NCBI GenBank assembly: GCA_002269645.1
Contig: NIVC01003511.1
Span: forward strand, 1-64,000
Length of the DNA: 64,000 nt
Source of the DNA: Macrostomum lignano
Lineage: Eukaryota
Direction of reading: 5' to 3'
Part shown: piece after piece, positions 8,001 through 52,931 of the stretch
Layout of the letters: every line of letters begins with the position of its first letter
Numbering within the stretch: position 1 is the stretch's first letter
Made by a program: the position numbers and the translations under genes
The notes under the pieces: generated by a model
The model's input: only the letters and a program-made list of their open reading frames with translations
Database searches by the model: none
Told to the model about the DNA's origin: nothing

Positions 8001-9071
8001 AATGTTTCTTGCATTATTGTTTTAAATAGGGTATACCTAGTGTTAATTATTTCTACCGAGTGTATCAATTCTTGCTCATTACATGTAACCCTCTATCCTA
8101 CCTAGGGTGACCTTTTTCTTTCTGATAGCTTATGAGATCATATTTAAGAGTCTGCATCCCTTTTTCCCACTAGACTCTCAATTGAGCTCATCCGCTTCCT
8201 AGATTCCAAGTTCCAAATATTTAAGTGGACCCTAAGTGTAAGCCCAATTTTTCAGACCCAACTAGCTACTCTCCCAATTAGCCATCTAATTAATTTGCTC
8301 CATGCTAATAACTATTTCTTGTTTACATCTTTAGCCATTTAAATAGTAATAACTATCTAGTTTAGTGTTGCAATAAATTACAAAGCAGTTAAATTGTGTG
8401 TTAAATGGTGTCTTAAACTTTTATGACCTTGGAAACATTCATTTGACCCTTGGTGGTCTTACTCAAGAAAAGTTCTAAGGTAGATCTGAGTAAATTTTAA
8501 CTTTAGAGCATTTTTCTATGAATTATTGTGGTAGAAATAGCAACCTACTACTCTTAGTACAACAGTCAGCAAATTCTTGTTTATTTAAAGTTTTTTGTAG
8601 CAGCTTCATTTCTGCATATTGGCATTCTAAGAGACAGCATTAACTAGACCACTGTTACAACCACAGCTAACCTCCCCATGAGCCTAACTAACTTAGTAGC
8701 CAGAAGAGCTCCCTATATTTTGCAGTCTGTGTCTCATTCATAAATGCCCAACCTCAAAATTTTCTCTTGTCTAGTGCGATTTAGTTTTGTCTAGATTTGC
8801 AACTTAGTTCCTCCCAATTGTGACTTAATACTTAGTTCCTTTCAATTGTAACTTAATTTTCACTTTGTATATGACTTTTCTTGTTTTTTCCTTTTTTCTC
8901 TTTTTTCCTCTCTTTCTTTTCTCCCTCCTTTCTTTTCCTTTGTCTTCCTCTCCTTTCTTTCTTCCCCCAATTTTTTATTTTTTTATATTTTCAATTTTGT
9001 GACTTACCTTGGCTAGCAGCCATTTTACATATCTAATTTGGATAGGTCATACAGGTGTTGGGCATGTATAG

Positions 9072-9348
9072 CATACATGCGCAACCCCCCTGATTTACAC
9101 TGGCCATGCGACTTACTTTTTGACCAGAAATGCGACTTACCTGTGAAAGAAACCCTAGAGCAACATTAACGTAATTTTGGGTAAACGGCAGGAGTAACTA
9201 TGACTCTCTTATAAGGGCTAAATGCCTCGTCATCTAATTAGTACTACGTCTGTATTCTTTGGGGTGGGCATTTTTGTGACTTACCCCTGGTCCACCACAA
9301 TTTACGGTGGCCAGATCAGCCAGGTCGGCCAGCAGTTGCGCATGTATG
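9072..9348. mobile_element. 277-bp MITE-like element E1 carrying a 28S-rRNA-derived core
   Basis: Perfect 14-bp TIR CATACATGCGCAAC; 8-bp TSD ATGTAT(A/G)G at 9064-9071 and 9349-9356; core 9134-9244. Confidence 0.85.
9179..9242 (+). other. 64-nt 28S rRNA fragment (H69-H71, R2/I-PpoI target region); not an rRNA gene
   Basis: GGGTAAACGGCAGGAGTAACTATGACTCTCTTA-taagggct-AAATGCCTCGTCATCTAATTAGT vs the conserved eukaryotic GGGTAAACGGCGGGAGTAACTATGACTCTCTTA-AGGTAGCC-AAATGCCTCGTCATCTAATTAGT (57/64 ungapped). Confidence 0.92.
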
Positions 9349-11528
9349 ATGTATGGTCTCATTCAAGTTCCTTTTAAATCATAATAACATAAAGACAAGT
9401 GTTAATTTAAACAGCCTAAAACCAAAGACTAATCACCAAGATGATTGTTTCTAACCCCCATCTTTATGACACTTTGAATGTCTATTGCCAAAATATCATT
9501 GCCTATTAGAACTGGACATTCATATATATATATATACTATTTATAATTTATAACTGTAATTTTTCAAGAAACTGCTTTCCATTGCTAGGGACTCCAATGA
9601 GATTATAGCATAAATTAAAAAACACAAAATATAACCAAAGCAGTACTACTTACTTAGGAATGCAAAAAAGTTATATAATATAAAATATAAATGATGAGTT
9701 AATATACATTTTAGGAGCAAAAAATGCTTTAAAATAAGACAAAATATAGATCAATTGGACAAATTTTACAAGTTATATTGAAGACAAGTTTTATATTTTT
9801 GCAAGAATTTTACAATAGTGACTATTATAGAAAATATTATTCTTTTGTTTTTTTAATTTTTCGAAGAAACACTTTATTATAATATAAAATTGTAATGTTA
9901 AAAGCATTCTAGATATAAAAATGCTATTTAAGGCCAACATTTTTTTAAGTTTTAGATTTCACCAAAAAATCATGTTTTTTAACTTAAGATTGTTTTGTTT
10001 TTGTTTTCTAATGGGCAATGTCATAAGCCACAATATAAGGTATCACAAAAAAACTTATATAAAGAAAAAAAGGTATATAAAAAACTTTTAATTGTAATAT
10101 TATCTACAAAAAGATAATAGTCCCTTAAAGGCAAAATACATTATAAGCCAAAAAACTCAATGACAAAATTTTGCATAACTTTTTTCATCCAAATTTCAAA
10201 AGTGAGATGTCGACTCTTACTTCTACAAACAAGATCTATCAAACTGCATAAAAGCCTAGCCTAATAAATAAAAGTAAAAAATAGAAGTTTCAAAATCTCA
10301 CTGGAGTCCTTAACATTGCCACTTAATTTGACTTTATAGCCTAATGCAAAGTCATTCTATTATAAATATTTTGTCCTAGGGCTTATTTCTGTCCTCCAAC
10401 TATCTTACTAATTGCCACCAAAGTTGTGCTAGGGGTTATTTCTATCTCACCAAGTTGTAATAGGTTTCTAATTTCCCTTTATTAAATTTCTACTGCTGAC
10501 AATAAATCTTGCCTTAATGTTTCTAACTGTTTCTTAGAATCTCATATATTTTCTGGGTAGCATTCTTAGTAGTGTTCTGGTAGCATTCTTAGTATATGGT
10601 CTGAGCAGTCAGCAGTCTTACTAGTATATATACTTTCTCTCTTTCTCCAGTCTAGGCATTACCAAGATTAGAGGATCATAGCGATCACTCTTAGTATTCT
10701 TTTTGCATGAATTCCCACTTCTGACTTTCAATACTACTTTACAAGACTCTTAGAAATGAACAACAATCTGAGAACTAAATTCATTTATATTCTATTGAAC
10801 AAGTGAACACAAGTATTATACGAGTGCATGAGTTGGTCTTCCTACCTCCAATTTCAAACTTCGCTCTTATTTATACCACCTTGACTATATATATTTATAA
10901 CAAATGTAGAATATTAGGATTTTTTGCAAATTAAAACAAAACATAGGCCCTAATTTTCAAGTAATTTTTTTAAATAAGGTTTCCTAGAAAACAATAACTG
11001 CTTCTACAATTTTGATTACAATAAAACTTTATTTTTAAAATTTTAATTAAATAAAACCCAATAAATAGATAGCCTAACCATTAAAAATGTTTATTTTTTA
11101 TAAAAAATAGCCTAGGCCTATCAATATAAAAATGTATACTTCTTAAATTTCCCATTGTCATTTTGTTCTCATATGGGTTTTATGGCTTAGAATATAAACC
11201 TAAGATATTGATAAGTCTAGTTCTCTAGTACTTAAAAACAAAATTTTAAGTGCTAGGCCTAGTGCTAAATTACCTTAGATAGCCAATTTAGCACTAGGCC
11301 CTAAATATTTCCTAAAGGCATAAAACTTTTACCAAACACATTAATAGTAGAATTATATGAAAGTAAAAAAAGATTATCCTAGATCATGTGGTTTTTTAAA
11401 GTTAAGTTAATGAAATGCACATTTTAAGCATTAGGCCCTATAAAATGAAGCTACTGCCAGTATCAGTATGGCTGGCTGACCTCCAGGCCTCCAGCGCCAC
11501 AATCTATTGTCCCTGCTGCTGAAGTTAA

Positions 11529-11660
11529 TACACGAATACTGTAAAAGGAATGTGGGGCAACTGCAAAGCAAAGTTTCAAGCTATGCACGGAACCAGCGAC
11601 AATTTGTTCGAAATGTACCTGCAGGAGTTCATGTGGCACAGCTTTCCCCGACCCCAATTA
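11529..11660 (+). mobile_element. Merlin/IS1595-like DDE transposase C-terminal fragment
   Basis: YTNTVKGMWGNCKAKFQAMHGTSDNLFEMYLQEFMWH resembles the HTNTIEG.W...K...HG.....YL.EF.WR motif. Confidence 0.7.
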
Positions 11661-12414
11661 GCATTTCGGCAATATCCTCTACTGGATAACACACTACTAC
11701 CCTATGTAGAACTCTGTGAACTCTTGCAAAAACTTTGTGAGCTTATCGGACTCTGAAAAGTTCAAAAGGGGTTCAAATAATTTAGAGCGGGAAACCGAAG
11801 GATCGCCTGAAGTAATTGGCGAAATCCAAAAACGTGGGATAAAACGGTAAAACAAATCTGCGGACATTCGATGGAAAGTAATGTATCTAAAAAAGGTTTT
11901 TGAAAGATAGATAGGTCTTTAGAAAATAGTTCTGGATAAAAACTATTGTTTTCATGCTTTATATTGTTGAATAAATAAGAAAAAACCACAAAAAAGCATT
12001 TTGAAAGTCCGAGTTGACCGATTTGCTATTTTTTGTTTCACTTTTTTTCATTATTAAACAATTAATTTTAAGACTTGTAGGCCTTAGAGAAGGCTAATTT
12101 TTTTACTACTTACAAAACAGAAAGTAATCTGTGTTTTACTTTTTATTCAATTCAAAAAGATGAAGTATTTCTAAGGATTTCAAAGTTTTTCTAAAACCAT
12201 ATAAACTCGCAAAAATTCATACTAATATAAAGTGCAAAGTTTGCCAGCAAACATCTTTTTCTAAAAGTAAATATATCGCTAATTCCTTGTTGCAAAATAA
12301 TCTTTAAGTTGTTTTCTTTCATTTAAATATCAACTTGCATAGTATTAGTATTTGTAATATGCCTATATTTAGACTTAAAAATTTTGGGTAAAAAATGGTA
12401 CCACAAAATGTGAA

Positions 12415-12940
12415 CCCGGCATCCAAATCAGATGCTTACTGTATGCTCATTAAGCGACGAAGAACAATGAAATTACACTAAAACATGTATCATCGCGGCG
12501 TGTATGCAGGAAAAAAAGAATTTTCCAAATCGCTTCAGTAGAAGCTGAGTAAAATGCAATTTTCCAATCCTTATGGGAATTCCAATGTGTTACCCGGCTT
12601 CCAAATCAGATGCTTACTGTATGCTTATTAAGCGACGAAGAACAATGAAATTACACTAAAACATGTATCATCGCGGCGTGTATGCAGGAAAAAAAGAATT
12701 TTCCAAATCGCTTCAGTAGAAGCTGAGTAAAATGCAATTTTCCAATCCTTATGGGAATTCCAATGTGTTACCCGGCTTCCAAATCAGATGCTTACTGTAT
12801 GCTTATTAAGCGACGAAGAACAATGAAATTACACTAAAACATGTATCATCGCGGCGTGTATGCAGGAAAAAAAGAATTTTCCAAATCGCTTTAGTAGAAG
12901 CTGAGTAAAATGCAATTTTCCGATCCTTACGGGAATTTGT
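12415..12940. repeat. 178-bp tandem repeat, ~3 near-identical copies
   Basis: ccaaatcagatgc at 12423, 12601 and 12779. Confidence 0.95.
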
Positions 12941-15219
12941 ATGTTTAAATAATAAACTTACGTTGAATACAATTTATTGCAAACGAACTCTATAAAATAC
13001 ACGTTGTCAAGAGTAACGAAAGTGATAAACAAATAAAACCTTAAAATAATGTTAAATATGTTGTAGAATTATAGAGTGTAACATTATAAGATAGTTAAAG
13101 TTAATAAAATACATTATTATAGCTTTTCAATCATTTTCATTAGACTCATTTTAGGTCGTAATTAAACTTACCGTTTTAACAAATCATTTTATTAAAAATA
13201 AAGCTATACGAAAATAATTTGTGCTTTAATAGACTTTTTTACTTTTTAAAAACTTGAATAAATTTATTTTATAGCTTTATTGCTTTCAAATTGCCAAAAA
13301 ACGAATTTTCATAAAACTTGCCCCCGATTTTTGGATTTCCCCAATTATTGGCAATTTTGGCATATTACTATCTACAAAGTTCTACTTCTACTAATGCTAA
13401 AAGAAAATTTTAAACAATAAATATCCCTGTTTAACAACTCCTTGAAAGTTTCTAACAAGGAATAGTAGTCCTTGATTCTTGTCATGAATTTAAGTGGCCC
13501 ACACTTATGAAGACTCAGTCCAATGATCGTTTAGTTTAGTTTAGAGACTTGCAGAATTTAGGTTAATTTTAAATTTGAATTATTGTACCTGCACGAATGT
13601 ATTGTGCTGTATTCTAAGAAAAAATAACGTTACTACATAACAGAAAATATAACCTTTGTAAACTATAAAGAGTATTTCTTTTGCTTGCTTAGATATTTTT
13701 TAATAAATTGTCAGTCTTTTCCGAACGGTTTTTCGTTCATAATCCGAAGGTTGATTTGGATTAAGTAATGATTCTCGCCTCTGGTGATAAGTGGATAACA
13801 GACGATAGCTAGGCTTCGAATTTGTATACAGCTCTGACTCTTTATTCTGACATTGAACTCTTCACATGTATTGAACTCTTAAATTAACTGTTATTAATTT
13901 AAGCCACGACTTTGCAATCACATCTTCATGACGATAATGAGGAACGCAGCAGTAGATGATAAAATAAGATAAATTTTTGAATGATAAGATTCGACTATAC
14001 GGAGAAGCCTCCCCTTAACTGGCCTAATGATTGTGTCAACCCGTCAGCACCTATAGCTAGACCGCAATGGCCGGCAATGATACTCAGACAAACCGCCCTA
14101 AACGTACATGTACGTGTTGCGCCAGCAAGGCTAAAGGTCGAGCAGGGAAGCAACAAATGAACCAAGAGGTTGGGGAGGGGGCAGAATGCATGTAACCTAG
14201 ATGTAGGGTGGATTGGAGGAAGTAAGAAAGAGAAGCGGAGAGAAGTGAGATCTGACTGTCATCGCTGCAGTTTTTTTTTAGCCAATATAAACCCCATGAC
14301 CTCAAGCCGGTAGTGGGGTTGACTGGTAATAGCAATACGAATAAGATGCTCACACTACACTGATGTCCCCTGTTTAGATACTGCTGTCACCTGTTAGATA
14401 CTTATCTAAAGTGTAGCTGGCAAGCCATTGTCCATCTATTTGAATTCAGCAATAGAAAAATCCTTGCAGTCGTAAGCATCATTCTTCATAACAGTTGCCA
14501 TGAAGTCGCAAACTAAATTAAAAATCGTCAAGCTCCAAGCCTCAGCCCTGCCCTTTCTTCTCTCTCCATCTCTCTCCTCTTGCGCCTTAGCTGCCGCCCC
14601 GTTACCTCTGTCCACTGACAATTCACCCCAGCGGAAAAACCAACGTTGATTCAACGTTGTTGCCCTCCGTTGGCCCTCCGTTGGGCGTGTCTGGAGGAAA
14701 ATCCGTTGATACAACGGCGGTTTACCAACGGCAGTCCAACTGCGAATCAACGCTATTCCAACGGTCAAAATATTGTTAGAGGTGCTGATCCACGTGAAAT
14801 AAAGTATGAAAAAAGCCAATTTTCGCAATCAAATGTGTCATGTCACTCATGTGTCCAAAAACGTTACATTTTAAAGTTGAGACATTTGGCAAAGATCTAT
14901 ATATTTGTCAAATGAAATTACAGCAAAGCAAAAAAATTTCTCGCATGCATACGCGTTTAAAGTCTCAGGGTTAGGTATAAGTGTAATCATTGGCAATTAT
15001 TGCAAACTAAATTACTTGTTTATAGGATGATATGATGGCTTCAACAACGTTTTTTATAAATCATTTCTTTATTTTTGAATAATAACTAACTGACTGTGTC
15101 CAATGATTGTACTGCACATAAGCTAAGTAGCTAAATTGACACAACATACGATCAATATCCCATTCTAGCCTGCTGATTATCTCAAATTGTACTGCTCACA
15201 GGTTATGACTCCAAACCAG

Positions 15220-17222
15220 TCACTCATCACTGTCAGCGTCGTAAATGATAGGGTCAGGGACCTTCTGAACGGAACGTCGAACCTTGGCAGGCGGAGGGTC
15301 TTGCGATGTGCCAACTCTGGCTGCCGACGCCTGGCTGCCTGACTCCGTCGGACCTTGACGTCCACGACTTCGCCCGTCCTTGCCCAGCTTCAGCGCAGCA
15401 ATGACTGCAAGCTCTACATCGCGGTCTTTTGGACGCTCAGCAGCATCGCGGTACATTGCCTTCATCGTCCCTAAAAGTATGTCACAAAAATACAATTATT
15501 AAACATAACTGATCTAAAACTAATAGGCCGTCTGATTTTAAAACCTATCAATACGTAAATCAAATGAATTAAGAATCAGTATACTCAGTAATTAATTTCG
15601 ATCATTGAATTTAATGTGATATGCACACACACACACACACACACACACGCGCGCGCATTGAACTTACGTAGAATACTGGGCAAGAACACCGATCGAAAGG
15701 CAAGTTCGGTGTCCCCAAGCTCAGAGCCAGAGAGAGCACCAAGACCCTTTCCGTTATAATTGACAGCGGCCAGCATCTCTGGTGACAGAATTCGCCTCAC
15801 CATTCGGCGAATGGTGCTGCCAAGGTCGTCAGCCTTGCAGGGCAGCAGCAGCCGTGTCATCTGCAAGGGTGCCAATAATTTTATCATACATGTAGATGGA
15901 CAGTCACGAAGAAATATGGAATATTAATATGAAATAAAATGTGGAATATGTCAGAGACAATTATATTTTCCAACTATCGTGAAAGCATGCTGTCGGAGGC
16001 TTTTTGAAATAATAGACTTTGCAAAAACAAACACTAAACTATTGGATGTACATACCCATTCGAGAGCCGGTGGATTTTTGATGAAGTCAATGTAGTCAGG
16101 CCAGGTCGCAATCGGCTTCCATTCTGCATCTGCATCAACTGGACCAAATGTAGTAGCAGCAGCAGCAGCGGCACGCGACATGCACTGCTTCAATTCTGAG
16201 ATTGTTGTCATGCAAGCTGATGTCCGACGAAGGGTATGGAGCCCCAGGTAGCACAGTCCGAGAGGCGATGTCAGAGAGACTCCAAGCTTAGCCTCCATTC
16301 TAGCCTTCAGCAAGTCAAGCCCCCGGTACCGAAGTTCAATGACGCGACGTCAGCTGCAGCTGCATTGAAACGCAAGGCTCCTGGCTGATCCGAAGGGCTG
16401 AGCAACTCAGCCGCACTCTGCTGTGACCTGCACCTGTCGTTCTGTCCATGGTGGGGCAGTGATTTGGGCGTTTCCGGTGGAGCTGTTTCAACCGCTAGCT
16501 GAGCCGATGGGTTTCTTGTCTCCGGCAAAGGCAACAGCGGCAGCGAGCTTGGGCTTTGTTGAACTGCCCTGGCGGAATCCTCAGCTTGGGGTAGTCTAAC
16601 CGACCGTGAGAAGCTTGAGGGCGATCGTTGGCAGTCAGACTCGGACTCGGTCTGCAGATTCTGAGAATGATTGCGCGCTACTTATAGTAACGTAGTTCGT
16701 GAGATCGATTGAATAATAATGACTAATGGTTACAAATGGTTAACATCTTTCGAAGTTTTAATACACACTTATAGCAACAAAAACGGTTTGTAGCTAACCT
16801 CCAAAGGAAGGAATCTTTGCCTCCTGCCATCGGGTACTCGTTTGACCAGTCCCAAAAGAGTTTGGATTTTGCAGTGCTTCTCGCGCCTGAACGCCCGAAG
16901 CCAATTTACCGTCCCAGTGGCGTCATAATCGTCGTCAGGGAGAACCTAGCGCAAATGCAAAATTACTTAGTGAAAATCAAAAATACCAAACGACCCCCAT
17001 ATACAAGTATGATTATGGGAACATTCAGGGAATAAAGCGTGCAGTTACCTGAAGAATTGTGCAGTCCCATACTTGCTCATTGTAGTATGCCCTTGCAATA
17101 GGCTCGCCAACAAAGTTTCGCTAGTTGTCCAGAGTGAATTTTTGGAAGTTTTCTAAGAGGACTTCAGTCTCGCTCAATTCGACTATTTCTTTGTCAACGT
17201 GAAAGATCACGATAAACTTCAT
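15220..17222 (-). pseudogene. EnSpm accessory gene (about 5 exons; C-terminus resembles DUF4806), with one in-frame stop and a frameshift
   Basis: ATG 17222, GT donors at 17048, ~16065 and ~15667 with matching AG acceptors; IRRMVRRILSPEMLAAVNYNGKG and DVELAVIAALKLGKDGR segments. Confidence 0.6.
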
Positions 17223-18594
17223 GGCTGAAATGAGAAATAGAAATACTCTTAATAATGGGAATATGTTGGAAATATATACATGACATGTTTGTGACATCAA
17301 ATAAAGAAATTCATATTGTCTGAAACCAAAATAAAAAAATTGTTATTCATATTATATGTATATTTGTGTTTATATTTATAAACAAGCTGAACACACAAGG
17401 AGACATTTAATGCTACAAATAATGAAAAATGTACACTTGCACACCCTAGGATGACAGTTGCATGAAAAAAGAAATTGCTATATTGACCAAGACTGACTTA
17501 GTACCAGAAGACAATAGTATAATCATAATCAAATAGCGCAACAATAGGGAATTACTATATATTCACCTCCAGATGATGGCAACAAGAAGCACTTTCTGCT
17601 TGCATTACCAGTAACAACATTACGTGTCACATGGTAAAATCCAATATTCAGAATTTCTGATGAATATGGACTTGTATACAAAGGATGCGAAAACTTTAAC
17701 ACATGACCAGTTAGGACATTTCCTACTACTGTACTAATGAGTATTGGAACTCCATTTACAACTGCACAATTATTTGGAGACAAACAAATTCATAAAGATG
17801 GAGCAAAGTGTGAGGGTTATAAGAAATTGATGCTTCACCATACAATGACTACATTTCCTTAACAAAAATCTCAATACAACGATAAGCATTTGGTAAGAGA
17901 GTCTGGTGGACATCAGAGCAAAAAACATAGATAGAAAAGTGCAAGTGAAGAAAGTGGTCATAGTATTTTTGTGGTAAAAACTTTCTGAAGAAAAAAGGCC
18001 CCAAATATAGCAAAAAGAGTCGAAACTCAGTTGCTTTAAAGTGAGCTAAATTTGTATCAATACGGCGAGGCCTCCGCTGAAACTCAGCAGGAGTGAACTT
18101 GGCATAGCTATCAATAAAATCAGACAGCTCTTTTAACTTTAGTGCTGAAATCTTACAAGATGAACCAAACTTAGATGAAAAAAGAAAATTAAAAACTTTT
18201 CTACAAACACCTAAACATACAGCATGTTGATAGTCAGGTGGAAAATGAGAATAAAAACCAATATTTTTAATACTCAGCAAAGGTGTTGAATGCCCTACCT
18301 TCTGGTTATTTTCTTTAGAATCAGCATAGCACTGATCAGTTCGCAAAGTACCAATAGAAGATGAAAAAACAATACGATTAGCAAAATGTCTACCTTCAGC
18401 TTGACAATAACTACATCCCATGCGAGAGTTATGGTTCATAATAGAGCAGATATGAGCATGAGCAGGGGCATCACAAACAAAAAGAGCACGGACTAACTTA
18501 AAATGGTGGCCAAGAACTTGAATACCATTACTAAAAAAAATGTTTAGCTCTTCACAGAAGCGTGATAACAAAATATTCAATGATGGTTTACTTT

Positions 18595-18873
18595 CCCTAT
18601 TGCAGCGCATGGCTTAAGTACGCCAGACGCCTACACAACCTGCGCCACGCTGTGAAATGACTTACCTGTGAAAGAAACCCTAAAGCAAAATTAACGCAGT
18701 TTTGGGTAAACGGCAGGAGTAACTATGACTGTCTTATCAAGCCTAAATGCCTCGGCATCTAATTAGTACCGCGCCGCGCTGTACTAATCGCCGCGCGTCG
18801 TACGCGCCGCGCCGCGCCGTATTAGATCCGCGCCGGACGCCGTCCGCCAAAATGCCCATGCGCTGCAATCAGG
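18595..18873. mobile_element. 279-bp MITE-like element E2 carrying the same 28S-derived core as E1
   Basis: 14-bp perfect inverted repeat ATTGCAGCGCATGG within CC...GG ends; TSD TTTACTTT (18587-18594 / 18874-18881; could be read as a 10-bp GGTTTACTTT); removal restores the transposase frame VGKSKPSLNILL. Confidence 0.88.
18704..18767 (+). other. Second 64-nt 28S rRNA H69-H71 fragment
   Basis: GGGTAAACGGCAGGAGTAACTATGACTGTCTTA-tcaagcct-AAATGCCTCGGCATCTAATTAGT (54/64 ungapped to canonical 28S). Confidence 0.9.
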
Positions 18874-21138
18874 TTTACTTTTACCAACAAAAATAGCAAT
18901 GGGCAATGGACGCAAATAGCCTGATACTTTCATTAAAATTGGCCAAGCTGACATGGAAGAACTATTATACAAGGGCATTCCATCTATATTGAAAATGGAA
19001 TTTACTTTTATGTGCCCAGTTTCAGAATCAGTAATGCATTTTGAAAAGTCAAAATAATTATTGCTAACCCAAAATTCCAAATTTTTGGCCATTGATACAT
19101 AGAAAAAGTCTCCTTTAGTAGCAATAATAGAATAATAAGAAGAATTAGCAGAATGCTTTTTCAAGCCATATACAGACTTTGGAACTGAAATACCCTTGTG
19201 ATTTAAAAAGGCAAGGATCCAAGCCATAGCAGAGCGTGACACATTAAAAAGTATATAAAATAGAAGCAGTTCTTGCTCAATTGTTAGCTCTGGCGTAGCA
19301 TCTTCAACTTCAGGTATATCTTGATCCTCTTCTACAAGGTCTTCATCTGATTCACTATTATCCATTGGATTGCCCTGACTGTTGCCAAGAAAGTCAGTGT
19401 CGTATTCTTCAGCTTGAATGAATTCTTCATCTTGTTGATGATTATTGCCTTGGGTTTGATCTTGGTTAATGGGTTCAGATGCTTTTTGAAGCTGCTCTAC
19501 TTCAATTTCCTCTAAACAACCCTGAAGCACTTTTCTAGCAAAGTTACGTTTGGACATCATGCAAATAATTCACAAGTAAAATCATTTATATCACAATATC
19601 TTATAGTAATTGGCAAATAATACTATACTATACTCATACTATATTTACCATGAATAATTATAAACAATTACATTCTTTTATTTCTATATATACCTGGCAC
19701 TGCACAGGCACTAGCTAAAGCATATAAATATTTATAGCTAATATATATAGCTATGACATAGCTATAGTAATATGGCCTACAATACAAAATAGTTATACAA
19801 ATATAGCAAATATATAACAAGGAAAACACAGCATCTACCTGGCATTTGAGGAATTGATCTACACACACATAGTAGCTAATAATTGATATGTTCCTAGGCT
19901 ATAGCCCATAAAAGCCCTAAATAAAGTAAAGATATAGTGGGTTAAAGGTAAAGCTATATACTGTCATGCTTGCTGGGTTAAATTGCAAAGAACAATTAGG
20001 CATTGCACTTCCACTGTTGCCAAGCCATGTGTGTTGTGTACATTTATGCAACTAAAAAAAAGAAAAAACAATTTTGAAACATGCATAGCATGTGAGTTAA
20101 TCATAATGACATAAAAAGATAGCTAGCCAGCTAATTCAAAAGTGAAGTTTGCAAAGGATCTGCAATACAAGCCATCCACAAAATAAAACACGTGAGCATG
20201 AAAATCGGAGGAAACTATATGCTAAACAGACCATCAAAATAACAAGTATGACAAAAATCCACATTCTCCTGCTCCAAACAGAAATTGCAAAACAATATTG
20301 GTACTATGTAAAATAGACGTGCGTCGTGATGCTTTGCAACATATAAGTTTATCAAACCAATTTTGTCTACTAATTATTAACAAAAAACTGCACAGTAGTT
20401 GCCAAAAGAAAACACTTTACATAATACGTACTGTGTAGAGCAAATCCAACTTAGTTCTAGAGTTATTACACAATTCCCTGACCTCAGTTTTACTCACAGT
20501 CTTTTTGGGAAATTTGGTTTACCGTTGAGAAACAACGGCAATTCAACGAAGAGCAATCACAACGGTTTTACAACGGTTTCACAACGCACTTCAAAAAATG
20601 AAATATTGGCTCAGTAAGCAAAATAAAAGCTTTTTTAATTGCTTACGAGCCATTTTGGGTACAAAGACAAACTTTTTTGTTCCCAACGCTTTTGTGACAT
20701 ACCTCCGTTGAAACACCGTTGGATCAACGTTGTCTTTTCCACTGGGACTTGCTTTGCCGAGCACGCAGCCACAGTCAGCTCTCATGCATTGTTTAACTCA
20801 GCAGAGCTCGCAGCATCCCAATGCTCCTGCATCTCTCACCCCGCTGAGCAGAGCAGCTGCCGCGGACCCCCGGCACCCATAATCAGCCCTTAAACACAGC
20901 CGCTGGGTCAGAGAAGAGAATCGGCCTCAGTCCATTTAAACAAATTTCTCTGCACAGGGAGAGCTCAGAGATTTCAGTCCGTGACAGCGGGATTTTTGCT
21001 GCTGCTGCTGAGCTGGCAGGCAAATTCGCTTGAAGAAGAGCAAAGCACTCAGTTTGAAGCCGTGTGGAACAGCTGCGGCAGACAGCAGATCGGCAGAGAA
21101 GCGCTGCTAGGAGAAGCAGTGTAGCCAGGGCAACAGAG

Positions 21139-24100
21139 ATGGAGCGGAAGCTGAGAGCGGCGCTGGAGTCTGGAGACAGCGAGGAGCTGCAGCGACTGTG
21201 CGGTGAGATCGACAGCAACATCGAGCTGGAGGTGGGCGGGTTCAAAAAGCAAGAATTTTCCTTGAAAGAACTTCTTAAAATGCCGCTGGTCCATCACGTG
21301 GCCTGCAAGCCGGTGAGTTCGTCGTGTCTGGAGCTGCTGATTGACAGATTCGGACCCGACTGTCTGAAAAACAAAAATGATAGCAGTTTTTGGGATGTCG
21401 GTGAGACTCCAATACACTTGGCTGCCCAGCATCAGGATGAATCTTGGATGAAGCTCGTTAAAGAGAAGGGAGGCAGCGACTGCTTGACAATTGTCGGTTT
21501 TTGCAAACAGACAGTCGCTCACTTTGCCGCTATGAACAGAAAAAGCAACTCTTGTCTAAAGTGGCTGGTGAAGGAGCTCGGCAGCGACTGTCTCACAGTT
21601 CCTGACGAAAACGGTACCACGGTTGTCCGTTTAGCGGCTTTGTATCAGGGCATCGAGTCTCTGGAATTGATCAAGAGACGAATTGGAACTGAATGGTTTC
21701 GGCTAAAAGGAGGACTGTGGAATAGAACAGCATTTCACTTTGCTGCTCAGAAGTCTGACAATTCAAATCTGAAGTGGCTGGTGGAGGAGCTCGGCAGGGA
21801 CTGTCTCACAGTTTCTGACAAACACGGTGACACGGCCGTCCATTTGGCCGCTCAGCATCAGGGCATCGAGTCGCTGGAGTTGATCAAGAGACAGATCGGA
21901 ACTGACTGCTTTCGGCTGAAGACAAAGAGTGATAGAACAACATTTCACTTTGCTGCTCAGAAGTCTGACAATTCAAATCTGAAGTGGCTGGTGAAGGAGC
22001 TCGGCAGCGACTGTCTTACAGTTCCTGACAAAGACGGTGACACGGCCGTCCATTTGGCCGCTAAGCATCAGCCAGTGGACTCTCTTCAGTTCATTTTTGA
22101 CAAAATCGGAGCCGATTTGTTCAGCTTGAAGAGCAACAGGGGCATAACACCGGCTGATGTTGCTGAGAGTGATCGGTGCCACACAGACCAGTCAGCAAAG
22201 CGGGCCTGGATTTTCTTCACTCAACGGCAGCTCGAAGCCTCTCGGCCTCCCGCTGGCAGCTCAGCGCCGACTGCCGCCTCAGCTGGGTGAGTCCTGACTG
22301 ACAAATAAAGTATTGAATAGCTTTTTTGCGAAAATTTAATGGGTCGTACTATAAAACTGTCGTAGCTAGTTCGATCGTACTTTGCGTTTTGTCACTTCTC
22401 CATCAAACAAATATTGCTATCAAATTTATAACTAGACACAGTAACAGTTTTCATGTAAAGGTTTTCGGCTAGTGCAATGGTAAAGCTACAGGTAAGTTGT
22501 TTTACAGAGTAACTTCTCAAGTTCAAGTACATTACGCCAACCTTTTTATGTGTAACGGGTTGGAACCTCTCCGAGGAAACTACTTGAATGTTCTGGGATG
22601 TTGGCACTTAATTTATATTGGCTACCTGTAATGCAAAAGCTAGCAAAGCCGGAAGTGGCACTGTGAAACTCGATACCCTGGGATTTGCATTATCTCAGTT
22701 TTGAAGCTCTGAAAACGCACTGCATGGTAGTTCAGAAAATCGGTGAAGCATTTTGAAGTCCAGCTGGCCTGTCATTCTGTTGCGTGAGAACTGAAGCAGC
22801 TGCCGCAATGGGAAGGCAATGGGTTTCGAATGGGTTTCGAATCTGATAGCGGATCTCAGAGCTATGGGTGTTTTACCTGGGAGTCAGAGCTGCAGGTGTT
22901 TCGATAGGGAGTCAGAGCTTTGGGAAAAAAGGTTTCCTATTTGGCAATAAGCAACTGCCTCCCTCATTTTCCCCACAGCGCTGCAGCTCCCAGCCCAGCC
23001 TCATCGGCCGCTCCTGAGCAGGGAGCTCACGGGGTTCGAGCTCCGGACTGCAATTCTGCAGCTCCCAGCCCAGCCTCATCGGCCGCTCCTGAGCAGGAAG
23101 CTCACGGGGTTCGAGCTCCGGACTGCAATGCTGCAGCTCCCAGCCCAGCCTCATCGGCCGCTCCTGAGCAGGAAGCTCACGGGGTTCGAGCTCCGGACTG
23201 CAATGCTGCAGCTCCCAGCCCAGCCTCATCGGCCGCTCCTGCAGAGCAGGGAGCTCACGGGATTCGAGCTCCGGACTGCAATGCTGCAGCTCCCAGCCCA
23301 GCCTCATCGGCCGCTCCTAAGCAGGGCGCTCACGGGGTTCGAGCTCTGGACAGCGTCACGCCACTGTCTGGACCGACTTCGGCATCCCAGAGGGGACCGC
23401 CTGAGGCGACTTGGTGAGTCCGCGCTGAAACTATGAGTCAGTTGATGACGCAGAAGGCCGAAGGGTGGTGACTTACTTTACTTAGCTGCTAGGGACTCCG
23501 TGCATCCGGATGCAGCGAGGGGAGGTGTTGCCGCCCGTTTCGCTAACCCCTGGCGACCACGGGCAGCTGGTGCTGCGGTATCGCGCAGGGAGATCCGGCG
23601 GTACCGGTGTCCACAGCGCGGCTCCTCCAGGAGGTGGATGGTGGCTCGCCCGGTAGCCTTTAGGTAGCGGCAGAGCTGGCAGGGACTTAGGAGCTGGCAG
23701 AGGTTCTCGGGCCTGATAACGTCGGAGAGGTTCGGCTTTGGTCCGAGGTAGGTGAGCCTGTCCTGAGTAAAGGCGGGGCATGCACAGATGAAATTCTCAG
23801 CATTCTCTTGATCCCGGAGTTATAAAAAGTGCATTTTCACTGTGGGTTTTCCCTAAAGGTGGTGATGCCTGGCAAAGCAGCCATGACCCGAGAGGGCCAT
23901 ACTACAAGACCTAGTGACCTAGTGTTCCTAGTGGTCCTTGAGCCCACCTATCCCTTTGCTTTGAGCCTGCGAGACCTGGAAGCAGCGGGAGGCCTGCTTA
24001 CACTCTCGGACGGAATTCCGTCCACGCTCTGCCCTCCGCTCAAATTCAAAACCAGCATTCCACCACGTCATGAGGCCAGGGACAACTGGAACCCCATGAA

Positions 24101-25991
24101 ATCCACTGCTTCACTGACGGGTCCCAAATCAACTCTGCCTCTGGCTGTGGCTACTGCATCGTGTCTGGAGGGAGAACTGTCGCGACCTTCTCCCAGCACA
24201 CTGGCAACCTGCTGCACCGTCTTCCAGAACGAAGTTCTCGCCATCAGCTCCTGCGCCATGGAGCTGCACAATCAACGCATCTGGGGGAAACCACTTGAAT
24301 TTTCTGGGATATTGGCACTTAATTTATATTGGCTACCTGTAATTCCAAAGCTAGCAAAGCCGGAGGTGGCACTGTGAAACTCGATACCCTGGGATTTGCA
24401 TTCTCTCAGTTCTGAAGCTCTGAAAACTCACTGGGAGTTCAGAAAATCGGTGAAGCATTTTGAAGTCCAGCTGGCCTGTCATTCTGTTGCGTGAGAACTG
24501 AAGCAGCTGCCGCAATGGGAGGGCAATGGGACTTGCGGTTTGGGTTTCGAATCTGATGGCTGATCTCAGAGCTGCAGGTGTTTCATTTGGGAAGAGATTT
24601 TCCCTTGAAATGGTTTTTCCTCTCGGGGCTTTGGTATCTGATATTTTGGGGCAGTCATCAGCTGCCTCCCTCATTCGCTCCCATAGCTCTGCGGCTCTGC
24701 ATCCCCGGCCTACCTCATCGACTGCTTATGAGCAGTGCGATTACGAGTTCCGAGCTCAGGACTGCGTCAGGCCATCTGGACCGATTTCTGCGTCTGAGGA
24801 GGGACTGCCTGAGACTCAGTGAGTCCGTGCCTAAAATAACAATTTTTTAAGCAGAAGGGTGGTGGTTATTCAGAAGGCTGACTCAAAAGTACTCTGGAAG
24901 CAACAAAACGTGTCGAGTTCCCTTAATTACATCCTGTTTTCAGAGCAGAGAGGCAGCTGGACCCCAGCTTCACCGACTGGGACTTCATCCTGCATGGCAA
25001 AAAGAAGCAGCTCATCGGCCGTGGTGGATTTGGAAAGGTGTACAAGGCCGTCACAGACCGCAACCAGACGGTGGCTGTCAAGGTGCTGCCTCTGAGGGAC
25101 ACCGGCCAATCGGGGAAGCTGCAGAAAGCCGTCGAGATGGAGAAGCGGGGAGTTGAGATCCTCAAGCGACTCTCGCATCCCAACATTCTGAAGCTCCTCA
25201 AGTGTGAGCTGAAGTCGGATGGGCTGTACATCTTCACCGAGCTGGTCTCGGGTCACAGCCTCTTTGAGCTGATGCAGCGTCAGCACAAGCCGTTCAAGGA
25301 GTCTGAAGTCAGGGACTTCTCCAGACAGGTGCGTCTCTGGGCTCTCTGGGAGTTGTGGAATCGGGGATCAGTGTGGGATCAGTTTGAGATCAGAGTGGGA
25401 TTAGAGTGGCATCAAGAATGGATACATGCATTTTTCGACAGGCTAAAGCTGCTCCACCTGCAGATCTGCTCAGGCCTGAACTTCCTGCACTGCCAGCCGG
25501 AGGGCGCCATCTTACACCGCGACATCAAGAGCGGAAATATAATGCTCACCGACGAAGGCGTCATCAAGCTGATCGACTTCGGTCTCGCCAAGGAGATCGT
25601 CGGCACCTGCGGCCTGAGCACAGGCATCGATCCCAAAGGCACCTCCTACTTCCTGGCGCCCGAGCTGTTCATGGGCGAGGGCGACTCGATTCCGTACTCA
25701 GCCAAGACCGACGTGTGGGCCTTCGGCTGCACTGTGTATGAGCTGACGACCATGCAGCCTCCTGACGGCAACGAGCCGCAGTTCAGGATCGGCGTGCTGA
25801 GGTCCGGAGGGCGGGCGATGCCTCGGATTGTGGACGGGTTCTCAGCCGGCCTGAAGGACTTCTACATCAGGTGCGTAGACTATGACCCGAGGAAGCGAGC
25901 GGACACCGCGGAGCTGCTGGGGCACAGCTTCCTGAGAGTCTCATCGCGACTGCGAGAGCGACGGGCTGTGAGAGAGCGGAACGAATCTTGA
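21139..25991 (+). CDS. Ankyrin-repeat protein kinase, paralog A: join(21139-22286, 22979-23413, 24687-24818, 24944-25328, 25464-25991), 875 aa
   Basis: ~9 ankyrin repeats (GDTAVHLAA / RTAFHFAA); all introns GT-AG and phase-compatible (2,2,2,0); kinase motifs IGRGGFGKV, VAVK, HRDIKSGN, DFG, APE (STE/MAP3K-like). Confidence 0.88.
22979..23345 (+). repeat. 75-bp coding repeat (25 aa, AAAPSPASSAAPEQGAHGVRAPDCN), ~5 copies, in exon 2 of paralog A
   Basis: Period 75 (22981 vs 23056); in frame in the gene model. Confidence 0.9.
23471..24289 (-). mobile_element. Truncated, partly inverted copy of the 27130-29600 non-LTR element in intron 2 of paralog A
   Basis: 23471-23807 is the reverse complement of 29273-29600 (3' end and AGTA tail); 23963-24289 is co-directional with 28459-28783 (RNase H start). 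Confidence 0.88.
24290..24860 (+). repeat. Internal duplication of intron 1 end + exon 2 + intron start (paralogous to ~22575-23470)
   Basis: Near-identical ggcacttaatttatattggctacctg...gccgcaatggga blocks at ~22604 and ~24313; exons 2 and 3 share their ends. Confidence 0.88.
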
Positions 25992-26419
25992 AGCGGTCTT
26001 TTTCGCTTGCTGACACCGAAAGTTGCCTGTTAATTATTGAATTAGATAATTAATTTGATAATTAGTTGTCCCTTTTTCTTTATCTAATGCCCTTGCTTAT
26101 CTGATTGCTCTTTTTGTTTATCTAATTTTTGTATCCCTGAATTCCTAGCCTACGGGGTCTGTAGCGGACACAGGGTACACTACTAGTACACTCGCACGGG
26201 TCGCCAAGGAGTGCTTACAATTTCCCAGCGTCTAAAGCGTCGGGACGCACCCATGATACCTTCCCACGCGTCGGGAAGCGGTGGTCGGAACGCTCTGGCT
26301 CGCGTACAGATGACGCAATCCAGTATCGATATGTCTAACTTAGGACGGCGTCAGGTCACTCGGACTATCAATTTCTTCTGCCAACCGAATGACGGAATTA
26401 CTTGGTTAGCTGTAGAGGC

Positions 26420-27129: not shown

Positions 27130-30150
<3,021 letters not shown>

Positions 30151-30189
30151 CAAATACAAGATGGGGTCGCTGGTTAGACAGAATTCTGG

Positions 30190-32260
30190 CCCGCACTATA
30201 GCTGGGACATCGGGAGTTTATGGTGAAAATCCAGAAACAGGTACGAGGCTCCCCTGCTCTGCGCGGTCACATGCTTCAACACTGAGTGCAGAAAGCCGGG
30301 TTGATCTGTAAAACACTGGCTGCTTAGTGCTGCAATCTGCAGCTGGTCTCTGCTTTTCCATTGAACAAAAAATTTCTGAGCCAGCATTACCAAGAAGCAC
30401 CGGCAAGTGATGTGCGATTCCAATGAAAAAATTCGCATTAAAGCAGAATTTGAAGTTTCGTCTATTAAGTCATCACCAGTTCACCAGGCCATTGGGTCTC
30501 AGCTACACGTCTCGATGTTTGGGAAATCCCTGGTGGAGATGCACATCTATGGCTGCTCAACTCTGTTTTAACAGAAACACGGGCACTGGAAAACATTGCT
30601 GAGGAGAGCGGCCCGCATACTCATTCCATCGGGATTCCCCGTGGCTCTCTTTGAGCTCTTCAGCTGCAGAGTCCGGCTCCAGGAAGTCTGCAGGGTAAAG
30701 CTTTAGTTGCTGGGCATCAGATGAGCTCCTTAGCGCTTTGAAGTGCGCGTGGTAGGGATAGAGCAGGTCTCCGCCAGACACCACTCGCTGGTTAATGTTC
30801 ACAATTACATCTGAGAAGGCTGTAGACAGAACAAAATTTTCTGGGTGCACATCAGTGTCTCTGCGATCAGTGATGATAACATCTCTGTCTCGAACATTCT
30901 CCCTTATCAACTCCATCCAGTCTCACAAGGCGGCAGTGAATATAAAGAAAAGAATTAAGTGAATCTGTGTATTCAGCAGCAGATTTGTGGCAGTCAAATT
31001 GAATGGGTGAGTTTGGAGTAATGTAATTAACTGGGTAAATGTCAAAATAAGTAGCCTTTTAATGCAGGTTTGCATAATGGGAGTCTTAAGTAAATCAAGT
31101 CGAGGATTGAATCCGTAAGCCGCGTCTGTGACAGAGTAGTGCACTCGTAGCCTTGGTCGGCTTTCTTCCATTGCACCTCTTATACCTCTTCTCCACCACT
31201 CGCCCTTTAAGTGCGCTTTTTCCTCCTCAAACGTTTCAGATTTGGTTCAATATTTCTTTTGCGCTTGACATTGCTACGAGTTGAGGGTGCGGATGATGTA
31301 GTGGAGGCCGGTATGTCCTGATCCCTGGAAAGCTCCCACAGCCATAGAGTGCATGCTTTTAGTGTCCTATTCTTACCCTCCAATATATTGCTGAATCAGC
31401 TGCTGTTCTTTCGTTGCAATAGGTTCACCGGAATCTGGACAGAGCATAACAGAGCTGTGTGTCTGTGCAAACTCTATTGCAATCACACAGCTCGTACGGT
31501 CGCTGTGAGTCCGACGCCGCCTGCAGTTCGTGCTTGTGAAATAACCCTTGGATCTTTTCTCCTTTCGTGTCTGGTATCCTGTACGTGTAAGGATAGCGTT
31601 TCGGAGCTATTTTTGCAACTACAGTGTACTCGTACACCTTCTCGCTCTAGTTTGCTTTGTGAATTTCAATACATTTACTTTTCTGAATAGTCCGGGTCCG
31701 GTGAAAAGTGTCACTTTGGTTTCCTGACTTTATCCAACACTGGTTTCTAGTGCCTTGCGGTCAACACAGGTTCATCTGCACTTCCGGCTCGTTTTGCTTG
31801 CAAAAATTTCTTGTAAAAAGCAGCATATTGTACTACTTCAGTAACTTTGACAGCGCATCAACCCACTTTTATTCTTTAAAGTTTTGCCCCATCGTTTCCA
31901 ATCGATGATTTCAGCTTGCTGCTTGTTTTAAACGCTAGAATTCCATTTTACGCTCGTATGTGCAAGCTCTGACGAAAGCTCGAATTGACAATTTTTTCCC
32001 CTGGTCTGAGCGAACTGTTCGCTTTAATTGTGCTCTTCGAAATTGTCTCGAGAGCAGACCTCACATCTGCTGCTGATTTAGTCGTTAGCGGCTTGGTCCA
32101 GGCAATTATTTTGACAGCACTTCGATGCATGTGAGGATATACTTGTATCCCTGATTGTACTTTGCGAATGGAATTATTTCTACCAGATACAGTTCTTTTA
32201 AGGTCCTCTTGTCTCCCGCTGTTTCGTTCTAATCCTCCGACTTTGTCTGACTTTAAAGTA
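30190..32260 (-). mobile_element. Degraded Polinton/Maverick remnant: integrase fragments and major-capsid-like fragment
   Basis: AWTKPLTTKSAADVRSALETI, WVDALSKLL..YN, YPYTYRIPDTKGEKIQGLFHKHELQ (Polinton integrase); STAFSDVIVNINQRVVSGGDLLYPYHAHFKAL resembles the Polinton capsid SLF..V.V.LN...YPY.AY..TL motif. Confidence 0.7.
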
Positions 32261-35072
32261 CGAGTACTTCAAGTACAATATTTGTAAGACTGCTACACAG
32301 AGCCTAAACTTTTCGTCCCCTGCTGCTGGAGGGGGAGGGTTCCTTTGTGGTTAGCAACGCCCGGGCTCAAAAACAAACACATTCAAACGGTTTTACAATA
32401 AATTAGTACGTTGCTATGGGGCGAGATAATTTTTTATTATCAGTAATTATTTTGTCTAGGTTAAGTTAGAGCGATTAGGGACAGTCAGACTGAAGTCTTG
32501 TGCGCGCATCAGACCGCCGGTCCAGTCCAGCCCCTTGGTTGCTATGCTCCTCGGGGTTGCTCATCGGCGTTGGGGTGGCTGCTGCTTCTTCCTCTCCAGT
32601 CGGCCAATTTTCACACTTACCAGAACTGACTTCGCTTATCTCACCTGTTTTGCCTGGCACCGCACCGACTGGCCTGGTATCTGGAATGGAGGGTGGCTGT
32701 TCTATTCTTATCATGCTCATGGTCCCCGCTACTTACCTCTAATCGTCCGATTCAGACGCCTTATCTTTCACTTCTACCTTTTGCACTTCTAAGCTAAGCT
32801 CGCCTTGCTCGGCGCTGTTTTACTTTAACTTCTTTGTGCAACTTATTCTCTGCTAATTTCTAATTCCTATGGTTCTCACTGATCATTTATAGCTCGAACA
32901 ACAATGAGTACTCAGGGATAATTTCTGTTTGTAAATAAAGTTCAATATCAACATTAAGTTTTAGTTATTTATTTGAGTTGCCGATGGATTTCGTCCAACA
33001 ATTGGACATCTTCAGGGTCGAAATTTATTTGAACCAAATTATTGAACACAAACAGTATATATAGTGAGTGGAGAGAAGTATTATTGGTAACCGAAATGCA
33101 TTCTTCCCCTACCAATGCTTCTACTTTCGATTAATATGTACAAGTTTTTAAACCATCAAAATTACATGTACTCGTACTTTCATACTTCTCCCCACTCACT
33201 ATATATACTGTTTGGGTTCAATAATCTACTTTTTCTACTTTTATTCAATTCAATTTATCTACTTTTCATTAAGCGAGCCACTTTGCCTAATTTCTGTTTA
33301 ATGTTCGATAATCCAACTCTTATGTGATTTTTATCCGACTTTAATGCCTTGTTTTCGAGCCCACATCGAGCCCTCATTTAGAAGTCCGTTGCAACCAGAA
33401 AAATTGCTGCTTGGGCTGCTCGGGGTGAAAGGTGATATCTTTTCCACCCACTTAAAATTCAAGTAAGACAAGACAGATTTCTTTCTTAAATGCTTCAAAG
33501 ACTGCGACAGATGACCTTTAATAGAAGAGCAGTGTATTTTAGTAACATATTGTGTAGTATCATGAAAATTGATATAAGAACGAATTAAGGCGAGCATACA
33601 CACACACGTACACACGAAGAGAATTTCTGTAGTAGAATACTTCGAAATAGTTGCTGTCATTCAGAAAGAACTTCACTCATCCTCATTGTCTTAGTTCGGC
33701 ATCCATATTGGCCTCTTGACCGCATTCTTCCTGGACGTTGCTTTCGTTTCCTGACGTTGTTTGTTGCAGCCGCACGAGTCCAAAATCGGTACCACACCGG
33801 AGCTTCTTGCAAGTCCGTGTCCTCTGGCAGGGATGTTCCCAGCATCGGCTGAGGGCATCTGAGGGCGTTGAAGTCACCGGCTGGTTAACGATCGTCAGCT
33901 CTGTTGGTTAGCGGGCATCCTCTCTGCTCTCATTCAGTTCAGTCTTGACTGGTAGCTTCACGGTGTCAAAATCATCTTCATCAGTGTCAGATGAGCTCAG
34001 CTCGTACTTCATTACTTAACTTGTCATCCAGCTGGAAGCTTCCCACGTTTTTGCCTCATGAGCGAAGGCAGGGGCAGGGTGCATGAGTTTCACGAACTCC
34101 TCACAACAGTCCTCTGACAGTCGCTTAAACCAAATTATTCTTTGTCTGACTTCGACGAACTTGTCGAAGCCTAACTTCACCACCTTAGTTTCCCTGCTTA
34201 GAGCGGCCTCACGAGGGAGCGGTTTACCTCTTTCAGTTTCGCCTACTGACGCATATTGAGGTTGAAGCTGGGAACTAAAGGCTTGAGGCTGATGACGCTG
34301 CCTTATTGCTTCATTATTGCAAAAAAATTCTGTCTTTAGAATTTTGGCTACCCTAACGTACGTGCCTCACAGAATCGTCTTTCGCAGATTCGCAAATACT
34401 TTTTTCAAAGCTGCTCCCTTTGCGCTAGTATATCTATGGCGGAGTGGGGTGAGTGCCGGAGGGAGGATGCTGGGAAAAAGGCTTGGTTGGTTACATTGGT
34501 ACGTCTCACTCCAAATGCATAGCACTTCACACTCTGCAGGCATAATGCTAGGCTGGGTTTTCAAATAGCTCGTTAAGCAGGTATATTTATAGCTACTGAG
34601 GCTTCCATATGAATAGGTTTTTATTTGCTGTCTAAATTAAACGAGTCAAATTTTCAACATTAAAACAGTACGTGCAGTGACAGAGACTAACGTCTACAAA
34701 ACTATACGAGTACACCTCTTGTTTATAACTCGATTACGCTTATCATATTTATAACTCCGGTTAGCGCAGAGTTGTGCAGCTCCACAACGACACTGCCCTA
34801 ATCTTTAACATTGCCGCCTATCTCCCTAGGGAAAGTGCGTCAGCGTTCAACTAACCCACACTACTATCCGCCTCAGTCCATTTAAACAAATTTCTCTGCA
34901 CAGAGAGAGCTCAGAGATTTCAGTCCGTGACAGCGGGACTTTTGCTGCTGCTGCTGAGCTGGCAGGCAAATTCGCTTGAAGAAGAGCAAAGCACTCAGTT
35001 TGAAGCCGTGTGGAACAGCTGCGGCAGACAGCAGATCGGCAGAGAAGTGCTGCTAGGAGAAGCAGTGTAGCC

Positions 35073-47103: not shown

Positions 47104-47164
47104 CTGCGAGAGCGACGGGCTGTGAGGGAGCTGAGCGACTCCTGAAGCGGGCGGCTTTGCTTGC

Positions 47165-52834: not shown

Positions 52835-52931
52835 CCCTTCTACGGTGCTGCGGGTGCCGGTGGCGGCTTCAGTGGCGGCGGCGGCGGCGGGTCCTGCTGC
52901 TCCGGAAGCGGCTGCAACTTCACTGCTGTTG

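Follow-up and report, generated by a model that had tools for sequence, protein, structure and literature searches.

The stretch analysed here, hereafter the window, is the 64,000 nucleotides of Macrostomum lignano contig NIVC01003511.1 from position 1 to 64000 (assembly GCA_002269645.1), and window coordinates equal those of the record. It is eukaryotic nuclear DNA with a G+C content running from ~30% to 60%, and it carries a CBF/NOC4 exon, a bestrophin exon, ankyrin-repeat and kinase genes, and a long interspersed nuclear element (LINE) reverse transcriptase together with RNase H; a search for tRNA genes in it gave none. Within it lie two small elements, E1 and E2, each bounded by its own terminal inverted repeat (TIR) and its own target-site duplication (TSD), which share a core that in part resembles 28S rRNA. 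For comparison, M. lignano sequence was sampled through 12 protein look-ups, giving ~290 kb in total with the window (~230 kb of it extra); these returned homeologues, haplotigs and copies of a family, X, that is related to E1. One locus retrieved in this way, L059, which was reached by way of public protein P0103, matches window 7849–29548 without a difference and has the same NIVC01003511.1 coordinates. The elements and their immediate surroundings are as follows.

9072–9348, + strand: E1, a 277-bp non-coding TIR element (recognised by its TIR and TSD, in haplotigs and in a homeologue)
18595–18871, + strand: E2, a 277-bp non-coding TIR element (TIR, TSD and empty sites)
8739–9070, + strand: X, a 332-bp MITE (miniature inverted-repeat transposable element) that is related to E1 and lacks the 28S-like piece (TIR, TSD and other copies)
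14627–20747, − strand: DNA transposon of CACTA / Transposase_21-DUF4218 type, 6.1 kb long, that hosts E2 (termini, TSD and paralogues)

E1 ends in a perfect 14/14 TIR, CATACATGCGCAAC, at 9072–9085 and 9335–9348. Its 8-bp TSD, at 9064–9071 and 9349–9356, reads ATGTATAG/ATGTATGG in the window, a match of 7/8; since the left junction in the homeologous locus L049 keeps ATGTATGG, the sequence of the right flank of E1 in the window, the ancestral TSD was a perfect 8/8. L049 is 92–95% identical to the window and conserved up to position 9140, which on the left side of E1 takes in its flank, TIR and arm, and E1 is therefore older than that split. The element is also 100% identical in haplotig L050 and 99.6% identical in L052, and is thus present on three contigs. 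We conclude that E1 is a true, old insertion. In L049 itself the core and right arm of E1 have been deleted together with ~1.3 kb downstream, ~1.55 kb in total (L049 7373–7417 against window 9141–10692), and the deletion junction holds ~43 bp of filler beginning with the hairpin GACTTAC-TTTTA-GTAAGTC.

E1 was inserted in the last 7 bp of X plus one flanking base. X has the TIR CATAAATGCCCAAC / GTTGGGCATGTATA and, once E1 and one copy of its TSD are removed, a perfect 8-bp TSD, GTCTCATT, at 8731–8738 and 9356–9363. Independent copies of this family lie at L057 6109–6480 and from L058 20043 to the locus end, making three in the ~290 kb with the one in the window; inside this last copy is a CT-rich low-complexity block (8880–8970). 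Alignment and similarity scores argue firmly that the arms of E1 and X are homologous (left 55 nt, z = 6.2; right arm, z = 5.6–10), so that E1 and X follow the ordinary MITE pattern, in which the ends are common and the middle differs. Both have an 8-bp TSD, a feature of hAT or P elements (ATGTATGG for E1, GTCTCATT for X), and within the sampled loci the E1/X TIR occurs in MITE-sized copies only.

E2 likewise has a perfect 14/14 TIR, ATTGCAGCGCATGG, at 18599–18612 and 18856–18869, and a perfect 10-bp TSD, GGTTTACTTT, at 18585–18594 and 18872–18881. The earlier note on this DNA had placed its end at 18873, for a length of 279 bp; the last 2 nt belong to GGTTTACTTT, and the element ends at 18871 with 277 bp. 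The length of the TSD falls within the 9–11-bp Mutator-like range, and in the ~290 kb the TIR was found at E2 alone. Deleting 18595–18881 (287 bp, E2 plus one TSD copy) fuses two minus-strand open reading frames (ORFs) into one of 474 aa, whose product shows 99% identity to a protein of M. lignano. An empty site with a single GGTTTACTTT was seen in 7/7 fetched loci (L001 and L053–L058), where the copies of the host transposon are >99% identical. That transposon is itself very recent, being missing from the near-identical haplotig L052, and E2 therefore arrived after a very recent insertion. E2 is thus a true and very recent insertion.

The host transposon has termini CCCAGYGGAAAA... and a 2-bp TSD, AC here and CT, TC, AA or GT in other copies. 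Intact copies encode two ORFs, one of 636 aa (Transposase_21/DUF4218 type) and one of ~455 aa, and relatives in its protein family carry Transposase_21 / DUF4218 domains. With at least eight copies >99% identical, it has the appearance of a CACTA / Mirage-like element that is active in M. lignano at present. The copy in the window is dead: its transposase ORF is interrupted by E2, and it has in addition a GAG>TAG nonsense mutation (stop at 17849–17851) and a 171-bp deletion at ~17780. A public gene model, BOX15_Mlig026035g1 (PAA51058.1, 470 aa), spans 1700 bp here (window 17849–19548) and skips exactly 287 bp, E2 plus one TSD copy, as an intron. No GT...AG boundary is possible in any register within the 10-bp TSD of E2. 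E2 was for this reason rejected as a spliced introner, having no canonical splice sites, and the annotated intron is probably artefactual, produced when transcripts of copies that lack E2 were mapped here.

The segment that E1 and E2 share, with the part of it that resembles 28S rRNA, comprises the following.

9127–9257, + strand: E1 copy of the shared segment, with its ungapped core at 9134–9244 (alignment, BLAST)
18654–18786, + strand: E2 copy of the shared segment, with its ungapped core at 18659–18769 and its 28S-like part at ~18704–18775 (alignment, BLAST)
9179–9250, + strand: 28S-like stretch of E1, helices H69–H71 (Rfam, consensus comparison)

The earlier note had reported two insertions that share a 111-bp core and have TIRs and TSDs of their own, and in this it was right: besides the perfect 14-bp TIRs, the ungapped cores are identical at 102/111 positions (E 1e-41 for the pair). 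A 26-mer from the core matches the window exactly twice, against 0 matches expected, and a self-BLAST of the window gave E1/E2 as the sole such pair, extended to 9127–9244 / 18654–18769. Homology is not limited to 111 bp, as had been supposed; MAFFT and BLAST together carry it to ~9127–9257 / 18654–18786, with one 2-nt and one 4-nt indel.

A scan of the whole window against Rfam gave no matches at the gathering threshold. Below it, LSU_rRNA_eukarya (gathering score 50) matched the + strand at 9190–9244 (32.7 bits, E 5e-6) and at 18659–18774 (25.2 bits, E 5e-4). Compared with a eukaryotic 28S consensus, E1 9179–9244 matches at ~60/64 positions. It differs by a G>A change in GGCGGGAG, a 2-nt insertion after CTCTTA and a 2-nt loss at GG^TA (an indel pair of +2 / −2 at CTCTTA^AGG^TAGCC), a C>T change before AAATG and the loss of G in AGTGAC. 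The E2 core has these derived differences from 28S together with a few of its own. Derived states common to both cores, together with a 5′ part that both contain and that is not securely 28S-like, argue strongly for a single origin of the shared core and against two captures from rDNA.

The earlier description of the entire 111 bp as 28S-derived stands for ~66–72 nt, which are securely 28S-like (H69–H71), and fails for the 5′ part. The 5′ 45–50 nt of the core are left out of the best Rfam alignment of E1, the longer alignment of E2 scores lower, and a direct test of the 5′ part against genuine upstream 28S sequence was not significant (p 0.19–0.27). The sole rearranged stretch of the 28S-like part is CTCTTAAGGTAGCC, at window 9205–9225 and 18730–18750, where E1 reads CTCTTA+TA+AGG-(TA)-GCT and E2 differs again. 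We take this stretch to be the target of R2, Pokey and I-PpoI.

The 5′ part has links of another kind. It opens with ~15 nt that make up the second occurrence of a subterminal repeat of E1, ATGCGACTTAC, which stands at 9106–9116 in the private arm of E1 and again at 9129–9139, and which aligns with TGCRAYTTA repeats of X. When the 5′ 50 nt of the shared segment in E1 were compared colinearly with X, p was 0.01 for the window copy and 0.054 for the L058 copy. A 17-mer from the 5′ part of the core, TGAAAGAAACCCTAAAG, also occurs exactly at L049 22051–22067, inside a different repeat (0.009 occurrences expected by chance), and another repeat family may also contain this part. The repeat in L049 has GTTTTGGCCATAGAC at both ends and is cut off by the locus end.

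Outside the shared segment, no similarity between the arms of E1 and E2 was detected in direct or reverse orientation, after purine-pyrimidine recoding or in global alignment (z 0 to 1.1). By these comparisons the arms are clearly unrelated, and the shells do differ as the earlier note had stated, in their TIRs, in TSDs of 8 against 10 bp and in arms that are statistically unrelated. Its observation that a shared middle with different ends reverses the pattern of a MITE family is true of E1 against E2; it does not extend to E1 against X, which conform to that pattern.

The core had also been placed at the same position in both elements, exactly 104 bp from each right end. That distance is 104 bp in E1 and 102 bp in E2, and the position agrees to within 2–6 nt without being exact. 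If the ungapped core is taken as the middle, E1 has arms of 62/104 nt and E2 has arms of 64/102 nt; with the full homology as the middle, E1 divides into 55/131/91 and E2 into 59/133/85. The total lengths coincide exactly and the offsets differ by 2–6 nt. A match of 277 with 277 between two elements cannot carry a claim of constraint, and we read it as a coincidence; the length constraint proposed earlier hung on this one agreement.

At the borders of the shared segment E2 has two further features. Its left junction shows an 8-nt direct repeat, CTGTGAAA, and its right junction a palindrome.

18762–18788, no strand assigned: near-perfect palindrome of 27 nt, ATTAGTACCGCGC-C-GCGCTGTACTAAT, where the cassette meets the right arm of E2 (13-nt arms, 92% complementary, 1 nt apart)

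The left half of the palindrome is the 3′ end of the 28S-like part of E2, and copies of the terminal motif recur in the right arm. Given the precedents for such events (PMC8277862, PMC3814204), the palindrome and the microhomology at the E2 junctions fit snap-back or template-switch synthesis during gap repair, and the palindrome may be read as a snap-back repair signature. Neither element could encode a protein, with stop codons in all six frames of both, and their predicted folds consist of the terminal TIR stem only (z about −2.4). A rod-like, viroid-like or foldback structure was rejected on the ground that the fold is limited to this stem.

Searches for further copies were made at several levels. 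No other core-bearing element was found in the ~290 kb of M. lignano sequence. Exact-pattern scans of viral contigs gave 0 matches to either core pattern, and a scan of metagenome contigs gave 0 matches to the 5′ part of the core. A 23-mer from the 28S-like part matched 47 metagenome loci, each of them a true rRNA gene, a junction with an intron or R element, or a short, unrelated piece of 28S; the 5′ part of the core is absent from all 47. A single protein query assembled from the peptides of both elements in six frames gave 0 scoring matches among 8000 candidates. Several of the metagenome contigs (L002/L004/L022, L036, L037 and L030) hold short 28S fragments from H69 and the R2 site in non-rRNA contexts, in unrelated eukaryotes, and at other loci the 28S gene is broken exactly at CTCTTAAGG. 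Scattered pieces of this H69 / R2-site spot of rDNA seem to be common.

The account that we favour, with a probability of roughly 0.6, is that E1 and E2 belong to two MITE families with different TSD classes, and that one captured part of the other by gap filling or template switching, in the manner of Pack-TIR elements. Two transposase systems would be at work, one producing the 8-bp TSDs of X and E1 and the other the 10-bp TSDs of E2. The E1 family would comprise the abundant X MITEs, with TIR CATACATGCSCAAC and an 8-bp TSD as in hAT or P elements; the E2 family would have the TIR ATTGCAGCGCATGG and a 10-bp TSD as in Mutator-like elements. These superfamily assignments (hAT/P for E1/X, Mutator-like for E2) are putative. 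In a first step the E1 type would have arisen from an X-like element that lost its middle and took in a filler of ~70 nt from 28S rDNA. A shell of the E2 type would then have filled a gap from an E1-type template, taking up a fragment of ~120–130 bp, so that the E2 insert would be the last subterminal repeat and the 28S-like piece of an E1-type element. The copying could have proceeded by template switching or gap filling at the repair of a break or an excision gap, a repair mechanism that we propose from the structure of the junctions. Lastly, the chimera would have been amplified and kept its mobility, with a very recent insertion at 18595.

The direction of this transfer, from E1 type to E2 type, is suggested, though not conclusively, by the fact that the shared segment starts inside the direct repeat of E1 and that this repeat aligns with X. 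Local capture from E1 itself, which lies 9 kb away and would suit a cis bias of gap filling, was rejected because the insertion of E2 is <1% divergence old but the cores differ by 8%.

Several observations weigh against the two-family account. Core-bearing elements of E1 type and of E2 type are represented by one copy each in the ~290 kb, so that each is at most a putative multi-copy family, and no autonomous partner of the E1/X or the E2 family was found in the sampled loci. Random capture of filler does not predict identical lengths and near-identical offsets. The likeness of the shared 5′ part to X is marginal, and the E2 version of this part shows no significant similarity to X. Moreover, Rfam also allows a colinear alignment of the entire E2 core with 28S 2200–2314, and the whole core could be a strongly decayed piece of 28S.

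The last of these points, with the second occurrence of TGAAAGAAACCCTAAAG inside the L049 repeat, also speaks for a second explanation, in which the core reached each family separately from a third source, either another repeat or a diverged rDNA-derived unit. It would be shown by a free-standing unit or an rDNA variant with the full core including GACTTACCTGTGAAAGAAACCC. Against it, the shared segment starts in a motif that is repeated in the private arm of E1 and conserved in X, and two independent captures with nearly the same borders would be unexpected. We regard a third source as unlikely, while keeping it in view.

The earlier note had seen in the core a conserved cargo, and the corresponding explanation is that the core is functional, under selection and repeatedly placed in unrelated TIR shells with a length optimum of ~277 bp. 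It might act as an RNA or DNA site that aids mobilisation, as a source of small RNA, or as a decoy of the R2 target in 28S. In favour of this are the length of exactly 277 bp in both elements, with the ungapped core within 2 nt of the same offset, and the likeness of the 28S-like part to 28S, which far exceeds that of the remaining sequence of the elements to anything. This part covers the region that we take to be the R2 / Pokey / I-PpoI target, and its sole rearrangement lies at that cleavage site. However, there are two instances only, with no more copies in the ~230 kb of extra genome, and the parts differ (55/131/91 against 59/133/85), the sum alone coinciding. The H69 stem is broken by a substitution in E2, and no structure was found beyond the TIR stem. 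Nothing observed speaks for selection, and since E1 is an old copy and the lineage of E2 is separate, the 8% divergence of the cores fits neutral decay. There is also an effect of ascertainment, the fragment having been recognised through its origin in the region of 28S that is most conserved. Taken together, these points make functional cargo improbable. A specific form of it, in which a ~115–130-bp module made up of the E1/X subterminal repeat and an H69–H71 mimic is a functional cassette recruited again and again by unrelated Macrostomum TIR shells, at a fixed place in elements of ~277 bp, is likewise a long shot; if true, such a cassette might bind a ribosomal, nucleolar or R2-type factor or yield small RNA.

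A single ordinary MITE family, of which E1 and E2 would be divergent members with arms that have come to differ, is very improbable. Their equal total length and the similar placement of the core would agree with it, but the arms are at random similarity in all orientations and after purine-pyrimidine recoding, the outcome of the very test that the earlier note had named for this case; the TIRs differ, as do the TSDs (8 against 10 bp), and a core at 92% identity beside arms at ~25% is impossible under uniform decay. An assembly artefact or chance resemblance, for which the presence of E2 on a single contig could be cited, is scarcely credible in view of E1 on three contigs, of the perfect TIR, perfect 10-bp TSD and exact empty sites of E2 in eight paralogous copies, and of a core match with E 1e-41.

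The two-family account has close parallels. The earlier note knew of no described system of this kind; the capture of filler by TIR elements has, though, been described (PMC8277862, PMC3814204). In animals, Pack-TIR gap filling and FoSTeST give fillers with a median of 224 bp and microhomology at the breakpoints (PMC8277862); medians in the Pack-TIR literature run from 224 to 305 bp, and no Pack-MULE was found in 100 animal genomes (PMC8277862). Like Pack-TIR and Pack-MULE elements, E1 and E2 are bounded by TIRs and TSDs around a short captured fragment (~70–130 bp). The host-derived, non-transposon interior that is a trait of Pack-TIR elements is represented in both by the LSU_rRNA_eukarya matches below the gathering score. 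The junction microhomology and palindrome of E2 fit template switching, and its 10-bp TSD lies in the Mutator range. They are unlike Pack-TIR and Pack-MULE elements in that the host piece is 28S rDNA and that the filler of E2 is itself part of another MITE. MITEs can also be born by abortive gap repair or microhomology-mediated deletion, as were Gnome, Elf and Goblin from Ozma (PMC3814204), and the formation of Ds is a parallel case for abortive gap repair (Rubin and Levy 1997, cited in PMC3814204). E1 resembles such elements when set against X, being small and non-coding with the ends of the parent kept and a different interior; in contrast, E1 and E2 share the middle and differ at the ends, which needs exchange between families.

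Sequences derived from rDNA are known in transposable elements (TEs) of other kinds, namely SINE28 and the 5S-derived short interspersed nuclear elements (SINEs), Cassandra terminal-repeat retrotransposons in miniature (TRIMs) and the intergenic spacer (IGS) repeats of Pokey, and the table of a 2024 review of the subject holds no TIR element with an internal 28S fragment (PMC10946416). E1 and E2 are likewise mobile elements that carry a fragment of an rRNA gene, whereas those are retroposons that use an rRNA promoter or, in the case of Pokey, piggyBac elements with IGS repeats. Unlike rRNA-derived SINEs, E1 and E2 have TIRs and TSDs of fixed length, and no tail or promoter boxes; an rRNA-derived SINE such as SINE28 was rejected as their identity, given perfect TIRs and the absence of a tail. 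In the CORE-, V- and Deu-SINEs one conserved central domain is combined with unrelated heads and tails; these are retroposed, comprise many families across phyla and have documented conservation, whereas E1 and E2 are two DNA elements in one genome.

Elsewhere in the window, an ankyrin-repeat gene is present three times (20920–22304, 34866–36232 and 44297–45548), as is a protein-kinase gene (24935–26191, 36621–37918 and 45974–47240), and the copies of these triplicates are 81–88% identical. Long minisatellites lie at 29464–30200, 39699–41300 and 58868–60440, with periods of 8, 26 and 20 bp. ORFs at 52920–55075 on the − strand encode a reverse transcriptase of LINE type and RNase H (Pfam RVT_1 and RNase_H).

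On present evidence, the pair formed by E1 and E2 most likely reflects an ordinary kind of transposon chimera and does not reveal a new kind of mobile system. For the annotation of genes it matters that E2 is currently annotated as an intron, and for the curation of TE libraries that the shared core would wrongly merge two families. E1 and E2 provide a clean example of a TIR element with a fragment of 28S rDNA, a type of case missing from the 2024 review; a host fragment of this origin is less common, and so is one MITE family taking over part of another. For M. lignano, a flatworm that serves as a model for regeneration and the germline, the locus documents a MITE, E2, that is currently or was very recently active, together with an active 6.1-kb autonomous DNA transposon.

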